A stretch of DNA of 64,000 bases from Oikopleura dioica (Eukaryota > Animalia > Chordata): contig OU015566.1 of the NCBI GenBank assembly GCA_907165135.1, forward strand, positions 11,284,001-11,348,000, written 5' to 3'. The notes under the pieces were generated by a model. The model was not told the DNA's origin. It worked only from the letters and a program-made list of their open reading frames with translations, and did no database searches. Positions within the stretch are counted from its first letter, which is position 1; each line of letters begins with the position of its first letter. Shown here piece after piece: positions 3,470 to 31,253 of this stretch. The position numbers and the translations under genes were made by a program.

Positions 3470-4998
3470 ATGCATTTATCGCAGATCAATCAGTTTAAAA
3501 GAGAGTTCGCTCGTGCGAAAAGAGCGAAAATGACTTTGTAAGTGATTAATGTTCAAAAATTTATTTGAATAATATAATTTTATTATTTTTTTCATAAATT
3601 AAATTCAAGAGAATGCTTCGGCTGCATCAAAAAGGAACCAGAACAAAACTCAAGAAATAAAAATCTCATCAAGAAGGACCAATCCGATATTCTAACATCT
3701 CTCAGCAAATATAAAATGATGGTAATTCAGCTCGCTTCTTTCTTGTCTGACTTATTTCTAGCACATCGTGTGTCTGATACTCGCAGTAACCTTCAAAATA
3801 ACTCAGTACTTTTTCAACAATCAGCCGCTTCCTTGCAACCATGCCGATATAATAGAATCACTGACGAGCGCCGATCGTAATAATTCAAGGAAGTCGCTTT
3901 CCATTCATACATCTGCGGATGTTGAAGCTGCCATTCAATTAGGTATTTTAGCTTTCCATAGAAAGTCATCTGTAACCATTTTTAGAGCTTGAATTTGCGT
4001 GTTACTACAAAGCAAACTGTTCCGACATTCTTCCAGTGTGGAATGACGCTACAATTAACTTCAACACTCCACTGAACACGACTTTACCCGAGGAAGGGTG
4101 TGCCCCGATAGATACAGATTGTGTGACATGCTGTCCAGAAACTCTCTGCCCGCCAGACGCATTTGGATTGCCGGAAGACATTTCCATGCCTTCCTTTATC
4201 CAGCTCTACGACTCGTATCACCCACGTGCTCTTCAAGCGAATAATATCTTCGTTTTCTGGGATTTTCTCTGGATATTCTTTGGCATGCTCGTCTGGTACA
4301 GAGTGCAGTCTCTCAAAGACGTAAGTAACATTTCTTCAATTCCAAAATTGACCTCTTTTTAGATGAATCTGGTCAATGTTCCCGTAGTTATCGACGAAAA
4401 GGATATCGGCACGATTTCACTGCAGTGTCTCCTTGCTACAGTCACGATGGTTTTCTATGCAACAGATGCCGCTTGCTCCTGGCTCTGGCTGTATTTGCAT
4501 GACAGGGAACGACTTCAGGTCGAGCATGCTTCGTATTTCACAGTGGAAGCAAGAAATAAGTCCCTAGGCTCGGTTTGATAAAAAATTTCTTTATCATTCA
4601 TCTTTAAAAAATATCATGAAAACCGAACAAAGCTGCGTGGCACACTTGCTATGTGCTTTTGATTATGAATCCGGCAATCTTCCTTTCTGTGCAAATGAAG
4701 AAGAAGCTTTGCAAGTACGAAGAGTTGCAATTTGCAAGAGAATCGTAAGATCGTTTCTGTGCGGTTCTACTTTATTTTATTTATTTATTTATATAATATT
4801 GTATCACAAAATATACCGAATATTTTCACAGCCACCTTTTGAAATCATGGAAGAGAACGATTTGTAGTCATTCTTTGGTTGAACTGGGCAGGTTTCCCAT
4901 CACTTGTTTCTAACTCGTTGACCTTGAAGAGGCGGCGATTCTTATTCGGAAATGAACGGGATAAAGAAGTGATTCGAAATGAAAACAATTTCGAATGA
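3470..4998 (+). CDS. Multi-exon membrane protein with Cys-rich extracellular loop; family unknown; both ends uncertain
   Basis: GT-AG bounded exons give HIVCLILAVTFKITQYFF..., ACYYKANC...GCAPIDTDCVTCCPETLCPP..., NIFVFWDFLWIFFGMLVWY, ISLQCLLATVTMVFYATDAACSWLWLYL. Confidence 0.5.
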
Positions 4999-5463
4999 AG
5001 TCTCTCGAGTGACCCTTGTCGCGCTCCTCCCGTCAAAGGCCTAATCCAGTCGCTTGCTAACAGTTGTGCCCAAGTGCCCAGATTTTCTCTTTTGGGCACA
5101 CAAAGGGAGGGAGAAAATAGACACTGATCCTTGTAAGGGTGCTCGAGCCAGATGCCCAGCTTGCTTTTATTTTCGTTTACTAAATTAATGACTTTGATTG
5201 AACAACATTGTTCTTATTATTTATTTTACGGACAAAATTTTTAATCCCTTATTGAAACATCTTGAGAAAATGGCTCAGGCACCTCCGGCCAGGGTCGAAC
5301 TTGAGCTCGGCGGGATGCCTCCCGGAGTGATTTCGAGTAGGATTTAAAAATCTGCGAAATAATAAAATGCTCGCCGCAGGGGCGCGTGCCCTAAGCTTGA
5401 TACATCTGGGCAGCATGAGCGTATGCTAATCGAATCTGGATGTTATATGTCGAAAGGCTGGGT

Positions 5464-22747: not shown

Positions 22748-24246
22748 ATTTCTTCAAAAAACTCTATTCTATTCTGAAGCAAATTCTGACTGCTATTTTG
22801 TTTCTCAAAGTATCCGTAGTTGGAAATGTCCTTTCTGGCTATCTTACACTTTCTTTTCTGAATGAGATTGACCTTTGTTTGCAAACTGTGAGCAAAATGT
22901 TCTCGCTTTCAGGCGAATAAAATAGTAATCAGTTTTTAATATCTCTTCTATAAACTTTTGATTGTGAATGAAAAACGCTCTCCTGTGAAGTAAAATCTCG
23001 TTGAAAATGAAAAAGATTGTAATTATGGAATGGATGGAAGCTCAGCCATATTTTATAGTGCATAATCACGTGATGATTCGGATCCCTAACAATTGTCTCT
23101 TCGAACCGATACTCAGGGGCTGGGACATTCAGCTTCCAGCTCACTTCAGGCCGAATTAATTTCTTATTTTCTCTCTCGCGTAGATTCTCTTATGTATTCA
23201 ATTGGGATTCTCTAAGATCTTTCTCGGGTGAGTGATTATTATGAGTTCGAAATTACGCTTGCAAGCCTGATCGAGTATTTTATTCTAGCACCGCTCAGAC
23301 ACATGCGCCCACTCGCCACTTCTGATTCCGTAATGATAAAGGTGCCATCGCTACCGGCCATGCCAAATTGCACCAGGCACCACTACCACCAATTCCAAAT
23401 CATCATATTCCGGGAATAATGCGCATCTCAAAACGACCAAGATTTGATTCAATTTAACGAACTCGAGCAGATTTGGAACAGTTTTATTGACAGGGCAAAA
23501 GTGCTTTGTTATGGGAGTACATACAAGTTTTTCATAAACAAAAAGCTGCGGAGCCGAGGCCTGGATGTTATGACCCGGACAAGAGGTTACTTGTTGTCAT
23601 ATCAAATGATCCAGGCTGTTTTTGGACGATTGTAATCACGCCACGAGTGTCTTAATTTAACGTTTGAGATTTTTTTTAAAATTGCTATTTTCTAACGCTG
23701 GCCCAAGTCTGAGGCATTCCCTCGAAAGGAACATAAAACCTTGTCGAACATGGGCTAATGCGGTTATCGCTCTGGCTCACCTGGACCCTTTTAATATTTG
23801 CTTATCATTTTCTTGAGAGCTTAAGAACTCACTTGTGACGAGCGTAACCGGAGATTATGCAAAAAAACCAATTTCTAACCTTGAATTAATTGGAGCGCCA
23901 ACTGTGCCAAAACAGTTTTGTTCTTCGCTTTTTCGCCAAAAGGTTTGTTGAAATATGTGACGCAAAGATTTTCTAGCTCTGATAAATTTCCGCGAATTCC
24001 AACGAGTGTGTGGCCCGTCTGAAATTTGTCGTAAAACACACGTAGATATGAAAATTGCCTATCTCACCTGAATACAGGCCAGTGTTCCCGGCATTTCATG
24101 GAAGTTTTCGATGGCAAAAACTTGGAGTATCTGGTGGATTACGATGGCGGTTTCTTCGAGAGACACATTCATTGCCAATCGAGCTTCAATTATTTCAGAT
24201 TTTTGACCTTCAGATAACAGTTTATATAGATTTCTATATAATTTTG

Positions 24247-27200
24247 TTAGAATAAAATACCGTCCGCGCCAAAGTCAGAATTAGAAATATCAGAAGAGCT
24301 CCTCAGCGCCTCCGAGAGTCTTGACGAGAAATCGTCGACATATGGCAGTGCTTTGGCAATTATAGGAGTATTCAGTTCCTGGACATAACCAAGAAGGTCG
24401 ATGAATTCAAGCCAATCCTTGATAATGACTTTTGCCATGGACTTGAGATTCTTCTCATCACAAGTGCGAATTTGAGACATTGAGTGGCAAACTATCGAAA
24501 GAACTTTCGTGGGTCATAAATTTGACGATCATTATCAGAGTTTAACTACAGTTATAGATGATCTGACCAGCCTGAAAAGATTTTGTTGACCAGCTGCAGA
24601 AAAGTTTGGTTTTCGTTTGGTCTTCTGCTTGAAACATCGGGACTCCCACTTTTCAACAAATCAAGCTAAAAGAAGAAAAATTCAAAGTGAAATAAAAGAC
24701 ACGTAAAAACTCACACCAGAAGTACTGATTTTCACGGTGTAAAGCTCGCATACCTTTTTGAAACCACGATCGAGCATATAAGTGAGCCCGAAGAGCTGCT
24801 GCTCTGGGTTATCTTCGAGCACCTCGCAGAGCTTTTCTTTCGCGCATCGGACAGCTGAATTGTTATTGTCGATGAATTGATGAAGCGTTGTTAACACTTG
24901 CCTAGCAGTTTGGCGAAAGGGCCATGATGGGTTTGCTTAGCTTGGGGATTTCCGCCAGCTTCTCTGCAACAGCTTACGAATTCAGTCAATGGATCGATAT
25001 AGTTGCTTTTGAAGGGGTGTATCAAGTTGTTTTCTTCTATCAAAAACTTCATGCAACCCTTTCCTGATGGCAGTCAAGAATTTTTGCTGACGAACCTTCT
25101 TCCTTGTTTTACAGCACGCGTACATGACTTTTTCAACAATTTTTTCTACAGTTGAATTGAGCAAGAGAACATCGCTTCCAAGCTTATTTGGATTGGATGT
25201 CGAGGAAGCTGCAAGCGAATTATGCTGACTCTCCAAGTCCTGTAATAAAGCTGAAGCATCTTGAAGATGCTCTCGCAGTGAGCCCCTTGGATATTTATCG
25301 AGTATAGGCTGACCACCATCGACGTTTACAAAGGCCTGTTGAAGCTTCTGAAAGTTACCGTAAATCAGGTCCTACCTTTTGAAATTAGCGTTGTCGTCAC
25401 CTGAGTGATGGATGCGAAATTTGCAAGTGCCTTATTGCACTGAGCTTGACCAGGTGCATGGAAGAGAATTGTTTCCTGGCAACTCTGCAGAGCGGAAGAA
25501 AGGGATTCTTGTGCTGCTGATGAGGGTGCATCAATTGTGACGATGAGCTTATCAAGGATGAGAATCACACTTTGTCTTTTGAAGGGGTAAATTTATGGCA
25601 TTTTTTACTTGCGGACTTGAAACTCTTACTCTAAGAAATAACGCCCATTTCCTAAAGTCTTGAATAGCCAAATTTGTAGCATCTTTCTGCAGGTGTGAAC
25701 AAAGAGCAGCACTTCCTAAGTGTAATCCAAGTTGGATTAGGATCTTGTCAACAGAATAAGTTTGAGCATTTAGTACCATATCGATTTCGAGCTTATCCCA
25801 TATTTGTGTGGTCTACCTAGATAACTTGTGTCTTTGTTCACACTGCTCCTGTAAAGCGAGAGTATTCGTATGCGAATTCGGGACCGGTTGTAAGATCTTC
25901 AATCGAGCTGATGAGACGCATCATTGCTCCAGCTCGGCGGTGGAGTGGTGTTCGTTTTTCTGGATCACCATTCCACTCTTTCAGATCCTGAAATGTAAAT
26001 TTTCGTCATTCTGATCATCTAAAACCCGCTTGTTCTGGCCACGTGTCCCAAATTGACGCACATCGGCAAATTAACTCCCGTAGCTCAGAGGTCAGAATAC
26101 CGGAACAAGATGTCAAATTCCCATGGATAATACAAATTCTAAGGAGTTCTGCTCACCTTTGCCATATCATTTGCCAAGCTAGATATGTCTTCACCGGCCG
26201 AAAGTAAATATTCGCGCATGTGCTTGTTACTCCAGGAGCTGAGACGTGTGCATGTGGAGCACAACTCGTTCGATAGCTTTTGTAGTCGGAATACTTCTGT
26301 GATGAGAGTGTGCGCGCTCACTGAATTGAACATATTTATCAACATTTGATTTTTAGGGACCTTGTGTTTTGACGATATTTCTAAGCGCCAATCTGATAGA
26401 ATTTATCTTCAGCTTGAAAGGTCTGTAATCAATCTCGCACTTCTTTCCAAAAGTATTTTTACTATCTGCGGTCACAATAAGCCACATGAGCGTATGTTCG
26501 GACTCGATCAGATCAAAAGCTTTCATCACCAGTTTGTTCGCGTTTTCTTCCGAAAAAGTTTCTTTCGCCAGATTATAGAGATCATCACAGATCTTTTTGA
26601 TTTCCGAAGCTGCTTCGTAGTAAGTTTGACTCGATACGACGTCGCAGTTGTATTTTGAAACGCCTTTGAGTCGGACGATTCGGTGAATTGTTGATGTTCT
26701 CAGAGCTTTTTCTTTGTCGAGTATTTCTTTCAGAAGTTCTTCTTGAGCATCGTGGAAGTTTTTCACTTGTCGTAAAAGCCGATCTTGATAATTAACGCAG
26801 AGAGTACTTTCGCTTAATTTCCGTAAGCAAAGAATTATTTCAGATCCTTCAATCGCCATCGCTTTCCACTGTTTTGATGCTTTCTCTGGAATCAAAGATG
26901 ATACTTTTGTCATGCTCTCCGCAAAGGATAGCGCTGAGGCGGCATATTCAATAACGTCGGTACTTGAAGAACCGAAGATATCTGACAGTAGCTCATGAGA
27001 TTTTAGGAGGGAGGCGAGTAATTCTTGTTTGTCGACTGAGTTGGAGCCAGTTTCTTTCGAAGCAACGACCATTTCCTTCAACGCAGAGTCAAAAGATGCG
27101 AAGTGCGGAAGAGTAAGGACGATAGAATCACAGAGCTTCGAAATTACTGGATGCTGGGATGGAATTTCATTCCATTTTTTCTCCTCGTAAAGATGACAGA

Positions 27201-28443
27201 CCTTCAGAAAGCATCGAATTAGCTCGTGACATTTGCCAACGAAGCTCGTATTAAGAGTCATATTGTAAATGTAGACGATTGTGTTCTCCATCTTTTCGAG
27301 GATGAGTTTCATGTCTACAGAAGGGGATTCGCAAGCTGCTTCGTCGCCAGAATGAATAGATCTAGGAACAAAATAAACGAAAAGATGACGATCTACAGCC
27401 CGCAGAAATGACCACTCGATGACGCCGTGTCATAGTTACAAGATGGTGATAACGTACCCGACCCACGAGTTGACGACCACGAGTAAATACGAGAGCGCGA
27501 AATGAAAGTTGGCTAGTTGCGTCATGTCCTCGTTTCTATCCCTCTTTTCAGGAGCTGAAACCTCGAATTTCCCAACTTGTTCGAAGTAAATGAAGCGTTC
27601 GTTGATCATTTTTATCGTTTTCCATAGAATGTCGAGTTTTGTTGGGTGGCAGAGTCGTTTGGACAGGTTCCAGTCTTGCACGAGATCTGTCAAAACAGCT
27701 GCTAAAGTAGCTGCTGGCTCAGCAACGCTCTTGTCGATATTGTAGAAAAACTCGGCGTTTGTGTGATGCTTTTCCAGCGATGCTTTGCGCTCTTTTTCCT
27801 TCTCGACCTCACGCAGAGCTCGTTTTTTCTTTGATTGCAGTCGATCAATGTGCAACTTGTCAATCAAATCCTGACGTTTCCTCTTACTTTCCTCATGTTC
27901 GTTCAGAATTGCAAAATTGTCTAGAAGCTTTGTGCAGTTCTTGATGAAAATTCCAGATTCTATAATCAAATCTTGCTGGGAAGCCGTACAATTTGGAGTT
28001 TCGACGAGTGTTCTGGTCGTTTTCACCAGCTTGGGAAATAATTGTGATAGTTGACCACCAATTTTCTATTTGAGGTTTATATCATGTTGCTAACGAAACC
28101 AAAGGTTTATTAAAAATTTAAGACTTTGGAAACCTTCCTTCCCTTCTTTCCATAAACAGCCCTCATCTTTATCAAAGTCTCGTTCGTGAACTGCAATATA
28201 AATCGACATTGCCTGTGACACGAGTTTTGCCTGAGCCGTTGTCTTCTGTACAGAGTCCGTGAATCGTAAGACAACCTTTCTCTTCACAGATGTAATAAAG
28301 CTCTGATCCAGAAATTGCACTCTAGTGGGAATTCTTCTTCTCCTCTTTGATTTCTCGTCATCGGGTGGTTTTTCGTTTGTGAAAAACCGGTGCGCTGGAA
28401 GAAAGCTAGCGCAATCAAGTTCAGTTGTTGTTGATTTAAACAT
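24247..28443 (-). CDS. Divergent talin-rod-like helical-bundle protein (~1,100 aa, roughly rod domains R4-R10), no FERM head and no C-terminal I/LWEQ domain seen
   Basis: Collinear matches to talin as recalled: QLFPKLVKTTRTLVETPNCTASQQDLIIESGIF ~ QIPLLVQGVRGSQAQPDSPSAQLALIAASQSF; FHAPGQAQCNKAL ~ KAPGQLECETAI; LAASSTSNPNKLGSDV...ACCKT ~ LANAARAEASQLGHKV...AASKT; CCREAGGNPQAKQTH ~ AKEAGGNPKQAAHT. Confidence 0.7.
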
Positions 28444-28752
28444 TTTGAATGAAAATTTAAAAGCGATAAAATTGAAGAGAAATCGAAAATTTCTGAAAAT
28501 AAAAGAATGAGTGAGGGCGCTCCTACGGCTTATCGCTTTTGATCTAACTGCACTTGAGTTTGATTTATAAGGGGTCAGTCAGATGAGGTTAATTCAACTT
28601 TCAGTATTGAAATTAAATTTTGATGGAATTTAAAACTTTGTTTTGACAATATTTGCAGCATATGCGAATCTTCCGGAAGACACACCCTAACGGTGTTAGT
28701 CAGACACATCGTGCGATTATCAGAATGCTGAGAAATTGCCTGCTGCTTTCGG

Positions 28753-28841
28753 TATAAAATAGAAAGTAACAGGAAACAAAATTACTCTATCGAAAAGGTA
28801 AAAAGTCGATTCATAATTCAGAGATCTAACTTTCTATCTAG
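28753..28841 (+). promoter_or_regulatory. TATA box and 5'-UTR intron of cathepsin L
   Basis: TATAAAA at 28753-28759; AG|GTAAAA donor at 28798; TCTAG acceptor directly before ATG 28842. Confidence 0.5.
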
Positions 28842-29863
28842 ATGAAGTTGTTCGCTACCCTCGCCGTCACCGCCTCTGCCCTCTCCCTCGACCACGAGAA
28901 CTTCCAGGAGTTCAAGGAATGGCAGGCTACCGTTGGCAAGGCCTACCAATCTGAAGGCCATGAGATGCGAGGCTTCCAGAACTGGCTCGTCTCTCGACAG
29001 TTCGTCATCGAGCACAACATCCGAGCCTTCACCGGCCAGGAGACCTTCACCGTCGAGATGAACAAGTGGGCCGATCTCTCTGACGAGGAATGGGTTGAGT
29101 ACAACCGACTTCGAAACGGCGCCAAGGCTAGCTCTGACTGCACGCCTATGCCATCCAATGCCACCCAGGCCAACCCCGACTCCGTTGACTGGCGAACCCA
29201 GGGATACGTCACCGACATCAAGGACCAGGGACAGTGCGGCTCCTGCTGGGCTTTCTCCACCACCGGCTCCACTGAAGGTGCTCACTTCAAGAAGACCGGA
29301 GACCTCGTCGCTCTTTCTGAGCAGCAGCTTGTCGACTGCTCCACCAAGGAGGGCGACCACGGTTGCAACGGTGGCCTTATGGACTTTGGCTTCACTTACA
29401 TCATTGAGAACGGCGGTATCACCACCGAAGAGGCTTACCCTTACCAGTAAGTCCAATAAACAAATGCAAAATAATCAAAATATTTAGCGCCCAGAACGGT
29501 GCCTGCAAATCTGGCATGACTGCTGCTGCCACTCTTTCCGAGTGCCACGATGTCCCCCAGGGCTCTGAGGCCGACCTCGAGACCGCTGTTGCCACCGTTG
29601 GCCCAGTCTCCGTCGCCATCGATGCTCACCTTCTCTCCTTCCGACTCTACAAGCAGGGTATCTACCACGACCGACTCTGCTCCTCCACTCGACTTGACCA
29701 CGGTGTCCTCGCCGTTGGATACAAGAACGCCGACTCTGGCAACTACTGGATCGTCAAGAACTCCTGGGGAACTAGCTGGGGTAACGAGGGTTACATCTGG
29801 ATGGCCAAGGACAAGAAGAACGGTTGCGGTATTGCCACTGCTGCTTCTTACCCTATCGCCTAA
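28842..29863 (+). CDS. CTSL: Cathepsin L (papain family C1A)
   Basis: Signal peptide; ERFNIN-like and MNKWADL prodomain; PDSVDWR; [11 protein letters not shown] (catalytic Cys); CNGGLM; [10 protein letters not shown] (His); WIVKNSWG (Asn); intron 29447-29487. Confidence 0.96.
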
Positions 29864-31253
29864 TTTGTTTGCCTATCTATATCTGTTCGTAGTAGTAAAT
29901 AAATATATTCAATAAAAACCAATTCTCGTTCGCTTGCTAAAGAAAACACCTGCGAAGGAAATAAACTTATTTCGACGAAGAATGTAACTTAAATATATTT
30001 TTATTGAATAATACTAACATTCGGCTCTGAGGCCGAAATTTTCAAATTGAACCGAACTTGTGAAAGAAGTCGGGAAGAATTCTAGGCATGCGTGGATTGA
30101 GTTGAGAGCAGTTTTTGTAGATTCTAAGTGAGTGTTGCGTTTCTAGCTGAAACTAAAACTGAAGTATGGCAGGGAATGGCCGGAATTGACTATTTTTAGA
30201 GCGAAGGTTTCCTCCCGATAGAAGCGGTGGTTTGATAAGAAAGTCAAAAAGTAAAGGTACCCTAAGAGACAGAAGGGCGAAGGTTCTTGTTGAAGAATCA
30301 AACATGGTTTTGAAAAAAAACAGAATCAGAGTGTGTCTTATAAATAAGAAAGAAGAGTGTAGCTGTTAGCCGTTTGTATATTTTCAAGAACAGATAGCGT
30401 TTACTTTACTACCGACTACACAACTATTGCGTATAGAACGAGTATCGCTAGAGTCAGCAAGGATGCTTTAAATGAATTGAAGGTATGTTCAGTAGGCGCG
30501 CTTGCTGACTCAGTGAGACTGAAAAAAGTAAAAAAGCAAGGTACAGTTAATCTGTAGCCTAAGTTACAGGATATGAAGCGATAGAAAGACAGAAGCATCA
30601 TTTTTTAGTTTTCGGGTGAGTTTCTCCTTATTTCGAAGCTGGTGAAGAGTCTATCCGTTCAGATTGAAGGCCTCAGGAAACTGAAAAAGAATGATTAGTC
30701 GCGTAATTAACATAATTTTTTGGACAAATCAACTGGTGAGCAATTATCGATAAAAGTCTAATTTCGAGCATTGTATTTGAATCAATTAGACAAGATCTCC
30801 AGTCGTATCAACGCTGGGCGTAATGAGATGATGGGAGTCAATTCTACTTTCGATGGAAAAATATATTTACAGAAGAGCCGCTCGCTCAGATTTTTTATTG
30901 ACTGCGTTCTCCTCATCTGAACCAGGGCATCAGTGTGTTCGAGAGCTAGGTCATAACTACTGCTCAACATCCCTAACCTACTTTTGTATGGGCTCAGTAT
31001 TACTGAGTCAGTAAAGCGGCATTTTTTGGTTCGTTCTAATTAGGCATATAAAAGCAGAATTTTTTCTCGTATGAGTATCAGAGTACAAATATGAAACAAA
31101 AGGGTTGATGTCTAGTAGATCATCATGTCTTCATCATGTCTACCATTCATTTTTAATGGAAAATCTCGAACATTCCTAACACCCACATTCGAAGCAGCCC
31201 TACTTGCTGCGTTACTAGCGCCGAGATCAATGTCTACATTTGAGATTTCCTGG

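Follow-up and report, generated by a model that had tools for sequence, protein, structure and literature searches.

A gene of Oikopleura dioica that probably encodes a much diverged talin central rod with neither head nor tail

In animals, talin is the central protein that links integrins to actin and bears the force between them, and the question raised by the locus described here is whether a large part of its rod can be encoded as a polypeptide of its own. The locus lies in a stretch of 64,000 nucleotides of the compact genome of the tunicate Oikopleura dioica (assembly GCA_907165135.1, contig OU015566.1, positions 11,284,001 to 11,348,000), which is called the window and in whose coordinates all positions below are given. 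A first-pass annotation had placed a headless, tail-less talin rod protein there. Our analysis leads to a similar interpretation, for which the conserved start, the end of the reading frame and matches to two talin-rod Pfam families give support: the gene is probably a very diverged descendant of the central rod of talin (bundles R4–R9), all-helical, with no head and no tail. The signals on which the talin ancestry depends are individually weak, and they are mutually consistent.

The gene model was obtained by reading the minus strand from stop to stop between positions 28,600 and 24,200 and joining the open pieces via short introns. It has 11 exons, 3,063 nt and 1,021 codons, runs from an ATG at 28443 to a TAA at 24554–24552, and has consistent phases and no internal stop. 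The joined coding sequence was handled for lengths and phases only, and all searches and structure predictions were made with single exons or natural open reading frames (ORFs). Two other contigs are referred to repeatedly. The first, L001, is a metagenome contig of 5,073 nt from a sister lineage, colinear with positions 29628–24562 of the window and likewise carrying a divergent cathepsin L gene. The second, L004, is a contig of 12,282 nt found in an exhaustive search with exon 3; it comes from a distant relative (ca 37–40% identity) that is presumed to be another appendicularian. The features of the gene are as follows.

28138..28443, minus strand: exon 1, residues 1–102; start Met and sequence kept in L001 (90% identity) and L004 (33%)
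28321–28356, minus strand: basic cluster EKSKRRRRIPTR, within exon 1
28066..28137, minus strand: intron 1, 72 nt, non-canonical GA-AG, absent from L001
27458..28065, minus strand: exon 2, residues 103–305; Talin_R4-type signature and a charged K/E/R-rich helix
27919–28050, minus strand: Talin_R4-type signature, residues 108–151, in exon 2 (Pfam PF21692)
26361..27361, minus strand: exon 3, residues 305–639; all-helical, without a family match; amino-acid identity to three lineages 77–94%
26157..26320, minus strand: exon 4, residues 639–693; 89% identity to L001, joined to exon 5 in L004
25849..25987, minus strand: exon 5, residues 694–740; 91% identity to L001; donor ACAG/GAGCAG (GA-AG) inferred from phase
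25652..25715, minus strand: exon 6, residues 740–761; putative donor TTTAG/GAAATGG (GA-AG)
25401..25575, minus strand: exon 7, residues 761–819; 66% identity to L001; APGQAQC at 25437–25457
25058..25347, minus strand: exon 8, residues 820–916; R9-type signature at 25063–25275 (residues 844–914)
24902..25005, minus strand: exon 9, residues 916–951; REAGGNP at 24945–24965; donor GC-AG (CTAG/GCAAGT)
24754..24854, minus strand: exon 10, residues 951–984; 100% amino-acid identity to L001, 76% to L004
24665–24555 plus TAA 24554–24552, minus strand: exon 11, residues 985–1021; variable Ser/Pro/charged linker, then conserved TFLQLVNKIFS

We now consider what the sequence resembles. In a scan with 24,736 Pfam models, two talin-rod families were matched, both with a curated cut-off of 27 bits. 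The first, Talin_R4 (PF21692), is found at residues 108–151 with E=8.9e-4. The same family is matched in L001 with 27.0 bits (E=6e-6), which reaches the cut-off, and in L004 with 18.7 bits (E=2.2e-3), and the alignments of all three sequences cover profile positions 44–88. The second, TLN1-like_RS (PF21865), is found in exon 8, with 20.3 bits in the window, 25.7 in L001 and 18.9 in L004, and with 27.1 (at the cut-off), 23.6 and 25.1 bits in the further orthologs P0012, P0013 and P0014. This match is carried on into exon 9, where it takes in profile positions 117–154 (E=7e-3 for 117–137).

Searches of the PDB point in the same direction for the second of these regions. With a profile built from three exon-8 sequences, Talin-1 chains are found at E=0.25, and with a profile from seven sequences the top four matches are the Talin-1 R9 chains 2kbb, 4f7g, 5ic0 and 5ic1, at E=0.03–0.33. 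The exon-8 value thus improves from 0.25 to 0.03 as the alignment deepens. The R9-like bundle has, in addition, a short motif on either side, as in talin. Ahead of it stands APGQAQC (residues 801–807; ERAPGQRRC in L004), which we liken to APGQxEC, a motif that we take to mark the start of R9 in talin-1. The one that follows, REAGGNP (residues 930–936), is placed by the profile alignment opposite KEAGGNP of a Talin-1 chain, at the expected offset. The four elements, Talin_R4, APGQAQC, TLN1-like_RS and REAGGNP, stand in the order that they have in talin, in agreement with the earlier claim of ordered talin-rod motifs.

The spacing can be compared as well. In talin-1 the bundles R4, R5 and R6 take up residues 913–1044, 1046–1206 and 1206–1357 (PMC3605642) and R7R8 residues 1357–1653 (PMC8287531), while 2KBB corresponds to residues 1655–1822, which form R9, a bundle of five helices to which the F3 subdomain binds when talin is autoinhibited (PMC2685691). 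In the window protein, the starts of the R4-type signature (residue 108) and of the R9-type signature (residue 844) are 736 residues apart. The corresponding gap in talin-1 is ca 737 residues, with position 44 of the R4 profile at about residue 958 and position 47 of 2KBB at about residue 1695, where the mapping from profile to talin residues is an estimate that is good to perhaps 10 residues. The protein resembles R4–R9 of the talins (TLN1/TLN2) in being a predicted helical rod with an R4-type segment near its N-terminus and an R9-type segment near its C-terminus, at the spacing of talin-1.

Two more signals come from exon 3. A weak internal copy of the R4-type motif is found there by hhalign (exon residues 175–212, E=0.017), and in a search by features of Evolutionary Scale Modeling (ESM) the nearest clusters of this exon belong to the talin rod only, with weak scores of 0.77–0.79. 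The two copies read LVKTTRTLVETPNCTASQQDLIIESGIFIKNCTKLLDN (27937–28050) and IILCLRKLSESTLCVNYQDRLLRQVKNFHDAQEELLKE (26725–26838), which is consistent with repeated bundles.

There are several results that speak against a talin origin and have to be set beside these. Taken singly, the talin matches at best reach the curated threshold, and each extends over part of a domain only. Between the two signatures, ca 650 residues (about 190–800) match no family and no PDB chain, their only matches being close relatives. The profile of exons 9 and 10 does not match talin in the PDB, and an exhaustive search of representatives with exon 3 as query found nine sequences, all of them short fragments of close relatives, with no talin of any other animal among them. 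AlphaFold 2 models of exon 3 (from a four-row alignment; 12 helices) and of the N-terminal 304 residues (with one very long helix) are both entirely helical, which fits a talin rod, but have predicted local distance difference test (pLDDT) values of 41.5 and 49.2 and inform on helical content only, not on four- and five-helix bundle folds. The better of the two gives no Foldseek match in the PDB at E<=0.001; the match of rank 1, with E=0.44, is a four-helix fragment of talin and was not counted as evidence. Finally, the ESM features of the N-terminal 304 residues, taken from the L001 ORF, are slightly closer to vinculin and alpha-catenin clusters (0.85–0.87) than to a talin cluster (0.84).

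Further negative results delimit the match. The talin matches take in ca 20% of the protein length, and the predicted models have pLDDT values of 41–49. PDB sequence and profile searches with exons 2, 3 and 9+10 and the N-terminal region found neither talin nor vinculin, and alignment of the R9-like profile with exon 3 by hhalign gave no match. PF08913, the family of the vinculin-binding helices that talin buries in its bundles, is not matched either, although sites as short as these may escape a search in a protein that has diverged so far. The R4 to R10 span proposed in the first-pass annotation can accordingly be kept in part: its R4- and R9-type segments are found, R10 is unsupported, and the ca 650 residues between are without a match, so that the gene is better described as R4–R9. 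The profile comparison that had been suggested as a check likewise gives a divided answer, with two talin-rod families matched and each of them at or below threshold.

The ESM result leads to the first alternative, namely that the protein belongs, in highly diverged form, to the vinculin/alpha-catenin/alpha-catulin family (PF01044) and is not a talin derivative. These proteins are also helical-bundle adhesion adaptors, the length of ca 1,000 residues is close to that of vinculin, and the very long helix of the low-confidence AlphaFold 2 model is of the kind seen in vinculin-type double bundles. In the ESM search with the N-terminal 304 residues, the top three clusters are all PF01044, with 169–177 shared features. 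However, a talin cluster follows at 0.84 in that same search and exon 3 gave talin clusters only. PF01044 itself is matched neither in the window exons, searched to E=10, nor in the pieces of L001 and L004, searched to E=1, and no vinculin or catenin chain is among the PDB matches at E up to 10 in any search, whereas two talin-specific Pfam families and the R9 chains of Talin-1 are matched. We consider this alternative improbable.

Another explanation to be weighed is that the protein is a lineage-specific helical protein unrelated to talin, and that its amphipathic helices match those of talin by chance, through a similar composition. Scores of hidden Markov models are known to be inflated by helical and coiled-coil sequences, the matches are partial and at or below threshold, most of the protein is unmatched, and the exhaustive exon 3 search returned only short pieces of close relatives. 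Chance would, on the other hand, have to pick out two talin families from 24,736 models, and to do so at identical profile positions in each of three to six orthologs, down to ca 38% identity, in talin order and at talin spacing. It would also have to account for a PDB profile match that is specific to R9 and improves with the depth of the alignment, and for the APGQxxC and EAGGNP motifs at their expected offsets. Little weight can therefore be given to an origin of the matches by chance. If the talin match were nonetheless false, what remains would still be a conserved, fast-evolving helical protein restricted to one lineage.

That the gene is under strong purifying selection is clear from exon 3, for which the ratio of nonsynonymous to synonymous substitution rates (dN/dS) is 0.080 relative to L001, with dS saturated, and 0.079 relative to a relative of 94% identity. 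A dN/dS of ca 0.08 indicates a functional protein-coding gene. A word search with exon 3 finds three close relatives with 94, 78 and 76% identity. Orthologs, which the first-pass annotation had named as a check, are thus at hand, in sister lineages at these identities and in L004 at ca 38%.

We now turn to the absence of a head. The start Met and the N-terminal sequence are kept in three lineages, residues 1–57 aligning from residue 1 with the start of the L004 gene (33% identity, E=0.004), and in L004 there is an in-frame stop three codons upstream of the conserved Met. No FERM family of Pfam is matched in the exons, in the ORFs between the cathepsin L gene and the next gene, which is TPR/KLC-like, or in the upstream ORFs of L004, and the earlier statement that no FERM-like exon precedes the KLC gene holds for the ORFs in this interval. 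A point against a headless protein is that, in the window as in L001, the reading frame stays open for 45 codons before the ATG. These codons are probably non-coding, because TTTTCAG, the sole acceptor-like sequence that the window has ahead of the ATG, is absent from L001, because the 50 nt next to the ATG, unlike the coding exons, align poorly between window and L001 and contain a 3-nt indel, and because the conserved part resembles a promoter or leader. The prediction of a headless protein is supported by the conserved Met, the upstream stop in L004, the lack of conservation of the acceptor-like site and the missing FERM match.

The upstream neighbour lies close by. The ATG of the talin-rod-like gene (28443, minus strand) and that of the cathepsin L gene (28842, plus strand; identified by Pfam matches to I29 and Peptidase_C1) are separated by 399 nt, which agrees with the ca 400 nt reported before. 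The region between them is

28444..28841, no strand: intergenic/promoter region common to both genes, from alignment with L001

and it contains, ca 60 nt upstream of the talin-rod-like ATG, the block GGAGCGCCCTC[A/G]CTCATTCTTTTATTTT, conserved in the alignment with L001. At greater length, the conserved non-coding block (window 28500–28560, L001 1050–1115) reads ATAAATCAA..CAAGTGCAG..TCAAAAGCGATAA..GGAGCGCCCTC.CTCATTCTTTTATTTT. Lying between divergent genes, it may be a common promoter or leader element.

At the other end, the reading frame stops ca 50 residues past the R9-like bundle, or ca 130 residues past it if the next ORF is spliced on. Neither I_LWEQ (PF01608) nor any other talin C-terminal family is matched in exons 9–11, in the 77-codon ORF described below or in the ORFs further downstream. 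The view that the protein ends before the R11–R13/I-LWEQ region is borne out by the end of the frame and by these missing matches, and the evidence supports a putative tail-less protein without R10–R13, I/LWEQ and the dimerisation helix. In L001 the frame ends at the same place, one codon earlier (IFSGWSED and then a stop), and an AATAAA follows ca 20 nt on, after which the sequence is unrelated. The stop at 24552 is therefore favoured.

It is important to point out that the next ORF follows closely on the same strand:

24250..24503, minus strand: 77-codon ORF (MSQIRTCDEK...), ATG at 24480, stop at 24249–24247; no family match

This ORF is found in L010 with 82% identity, where it again lies 3' of exon 11, and relative to a haplotype of 95.7% identity (L011–L013) its substitutions are of coding type, mostly synonymous. 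Its stop TAA is TTA in that haplotype, in which the frame is 19 codons longer. The conservation of exon 11 ends precisely at TTTTCAG/G. Beyond this point the position of the stop differs across four lineages, the G is followed by C, A or G depending on the lineage, and the 95.7% haplotype (L011) has an 8-nt indel. A splice to a twelfth exon could be made in frame, from a phase-1 non-canonical G[C/A/G] donor at 24571/24570 to an acceptor AAAG/TT at 24504/24503. Whether the ORF would be a separate gene ca 70 nt past the stop or a twelfth exon, which would bring the protein to ca 1,100 residues, we judge to be about evenly balanced. Of the span 24247–28443 assigned to the gene in the first-pass annotation, the start at 28443 is retained, while the 3' end may be at 24552, with the last 300 nt (ORF 24480–24250) possibly belonging to a separate gene.

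About 75 nt past this ORF there is yet another small gene on the minus strand (ca 23878–24172; ATG at 24172, MNVSLEETAIV...), with no Pfam match, a GT..AG intron at ca 24067–24017 and coverage by sister-lineage RNA reads (runs X5 and X6). The close spacing of three units on the same strand suggests an operon.

The remaining explanation is that this is the middle of an ordinary talin gene, with its head and tail exons either joined to it by splicing over the neighbouring cathepsin L and KLC genes or lost by misassembly. It can appeal to the 45 open codons and to the TTTTCAG site in the window, but is very unlikely. That site is not in L001, and the alignment of the 50 nt ahead of the ATG is poor and interrupted by a 3-nt indel. 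In L004 the Met is preceded, three codons away, by a stop, and the upstream surroundings differ from those in the window. None of the downstream ORFs resembles talin, and the independent metagenome contig L001, with the same cathepsin L arrangement, argues against misassembly.

The exon structure itself was examined by comparison. Exons 1 and 2 form a single ORF of 304 codons in L001, reading ...LWKEGKKLGGQL... / ...CLWKEGKKLGGQLSRIFPNL... across the site of intron 1 in the window, and because L001 reads through uninterrupted, intron 1 is taken to be a 72-nt GA-AG intron at 28137–28066. Exons 2+3, 4+5 and 9+10 are each fused in L004, and the junctions 2/3, 4/5 and 9/10 are therefore confirmed. 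For exon 6, an identical AG/GAAA donor and AAAAG/A acceptor are found in phase in L001. For introns 5 and 6, the GA donors are deduced from phase and from an AG/GA pattern that L001 shares. In all, three introns need a GA donor and one a GC donor. For exon 8, the alternative donor AT/GTACGC was discarded, since ACCKTRKKVRQQ is conserved in L004.

The available RNA runs bear the same species label and come from a diverged lineage, with reads 90–95% alike; they give nearly no coverage of the gene and a single splice joint. This joint comes from run X5, in which five reads connect 24754 to 24665 (intron 10, GT..AG, minus strand). The overhangs of these reads match L001, which shows that the gene is transcribed and spliced in the sister lineage. 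The existence of a multi-exon minus-strand gene at the place first proposed is thus upheld by the 11-exon model, by the junctions in L001 and L004 and by the X5 splice joint.

Two observations on the introns may be added. This one gene appears to have non-canonical introns at 28066–28137, 25716–25848 and 25576–25651 (GA-AG) and at 24855–24901 (GC-AG). The intron content also differs between lineages: intron 1 is present in the window and not in L001, L004 lacks three other introns, and exon 1 in L004 is interrupted by an intron of ca 1.9 kb.

How does a rod of this kind relate to known proteins? Compared with talin, the gene lacks the FERM head (F0–F3), with which talin binds integrin beta tails, the linker, R1–R3, R10–R13, with the actin-binding I/LWEQ bundle in R13, and the dimerisation helix, and its R5–R8 equivalents are not recognisable by sequence. 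It has, on the other hand, parts that are extra: ca 60 N-terminal residues with the basic cluster, the K/E/R-rich helix, and a short tail past the R9-like part. According to reviews, the five-helix talin rod fold is known only in talins and TLNRD1 (PMC8697387), and TLNRD1, without head or tail, is the sole rod-only talin derivative described (PMC8287531, PMC8697387). TLNRD1 has ca 360 residues, is encoded in one exon and comprises R7R8 only (PMC8287531). Its module has nine helices, a five-helix bundle into which a four-helix bundle is inserted. Our protein shares with it the rod-only character, and TLNRD1 can serve as a model for a free scaffold, an actin bundler or a decoy. The differences are that the present protein has ca 1,020 residues from 11 exons, that it is R4- to R9-like, and that its signatures map to R4 and R9 and not to R7R8. 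No TLNRD1 chain is among the PDB sequence matches, the best of which are talin R9, and in Foldseek the TLNRD1 four-helix bundle appears at rank 30 with E>1. The gene would be a larger and different rod-only variant than TLNRD1, found so far only in Oikopleura dioica and its relatives. Within the part of the literature that the search covered, no publication that treats a talin gene, or one like talin, in Oikopleura was found; PMC3913557 names Oikopleura solely for actin staining of notochord cells.

In vertebrate talin, R4–R8 hold the internal actin-binding site ABS2, R7R8 is a hub for partners with LD motifs, and R9 binds F3 (PMC8287531, PMC2685691). A protein with no head would therefore neither bind nor activate integrins, and one with no C-terminal actin site and no dimerisation helix would therefore not transmit force from integrin to actin. 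By analogy with TLNRD1, the most likely role of the talin-rod-like protein would be that of a free cytoplasmic helical-bundle scaffold or competitor and not of a force transmitter. As the ABS2, R7R8 and R9 regions appear to be retained, the most likely activities would be association with actin and the binding or sequestering of talin partners or of the talin head. The cluster EKSKRRRRIPTR and the charged helix past the R4-like part could have roles in nuclear import, lipid binding or spacing.

A different arrangement, which we regard as rather unlikely, is that talin is split in appendicularians, with the head made from a separate gene and the R4–R9 rod made here as an independent polypeptide. 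The link from integrin via talin to actin, elsewhere a single chain, would then be replaced by separate proteins, the R9-like bundle would bind F3 of the head in trans, and autoinhibition would become a regulation between two proteins. With the head encoded separately, it could be directly tested in a tractable chordate whether talin has to be a single chain. If the gene is a diverged R4–R9 rod, as we prefer to read it, it would be the second rod-only talin derivative and a much larger one, and it would offer a natural experiment on the central rod (ABS2, the R7R8 hub and the F3-binding R9) in isolation from head and tail.

Finally, a few features of the neighbouring sequences should be mentioned. 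The contig L004 opens, at 1–1176, with a V/P/A-rich repeat frame of 392 codons (VVPADVVPAEVV...) that matches no family. In L001, past the stop and the AATAAA, positions 4905–5073 hold a run of G together with copies of the motifs CTGATTGG / CCAATCAG, none of it related to the window; an assembly join could explain this segment, as could an insertion or a different neighbour. The cathepsin L gene (28925–29900, plus strand) has deep coverage in RNA run X4 with fixed differences throughout; among the X4 joints there, the one at 29428/29504 has 34 letters replaced, and another, at 29078/29218, is a skip. This signal looks like a diverged ortholog or paralog with other intron content, and not like the window allele.

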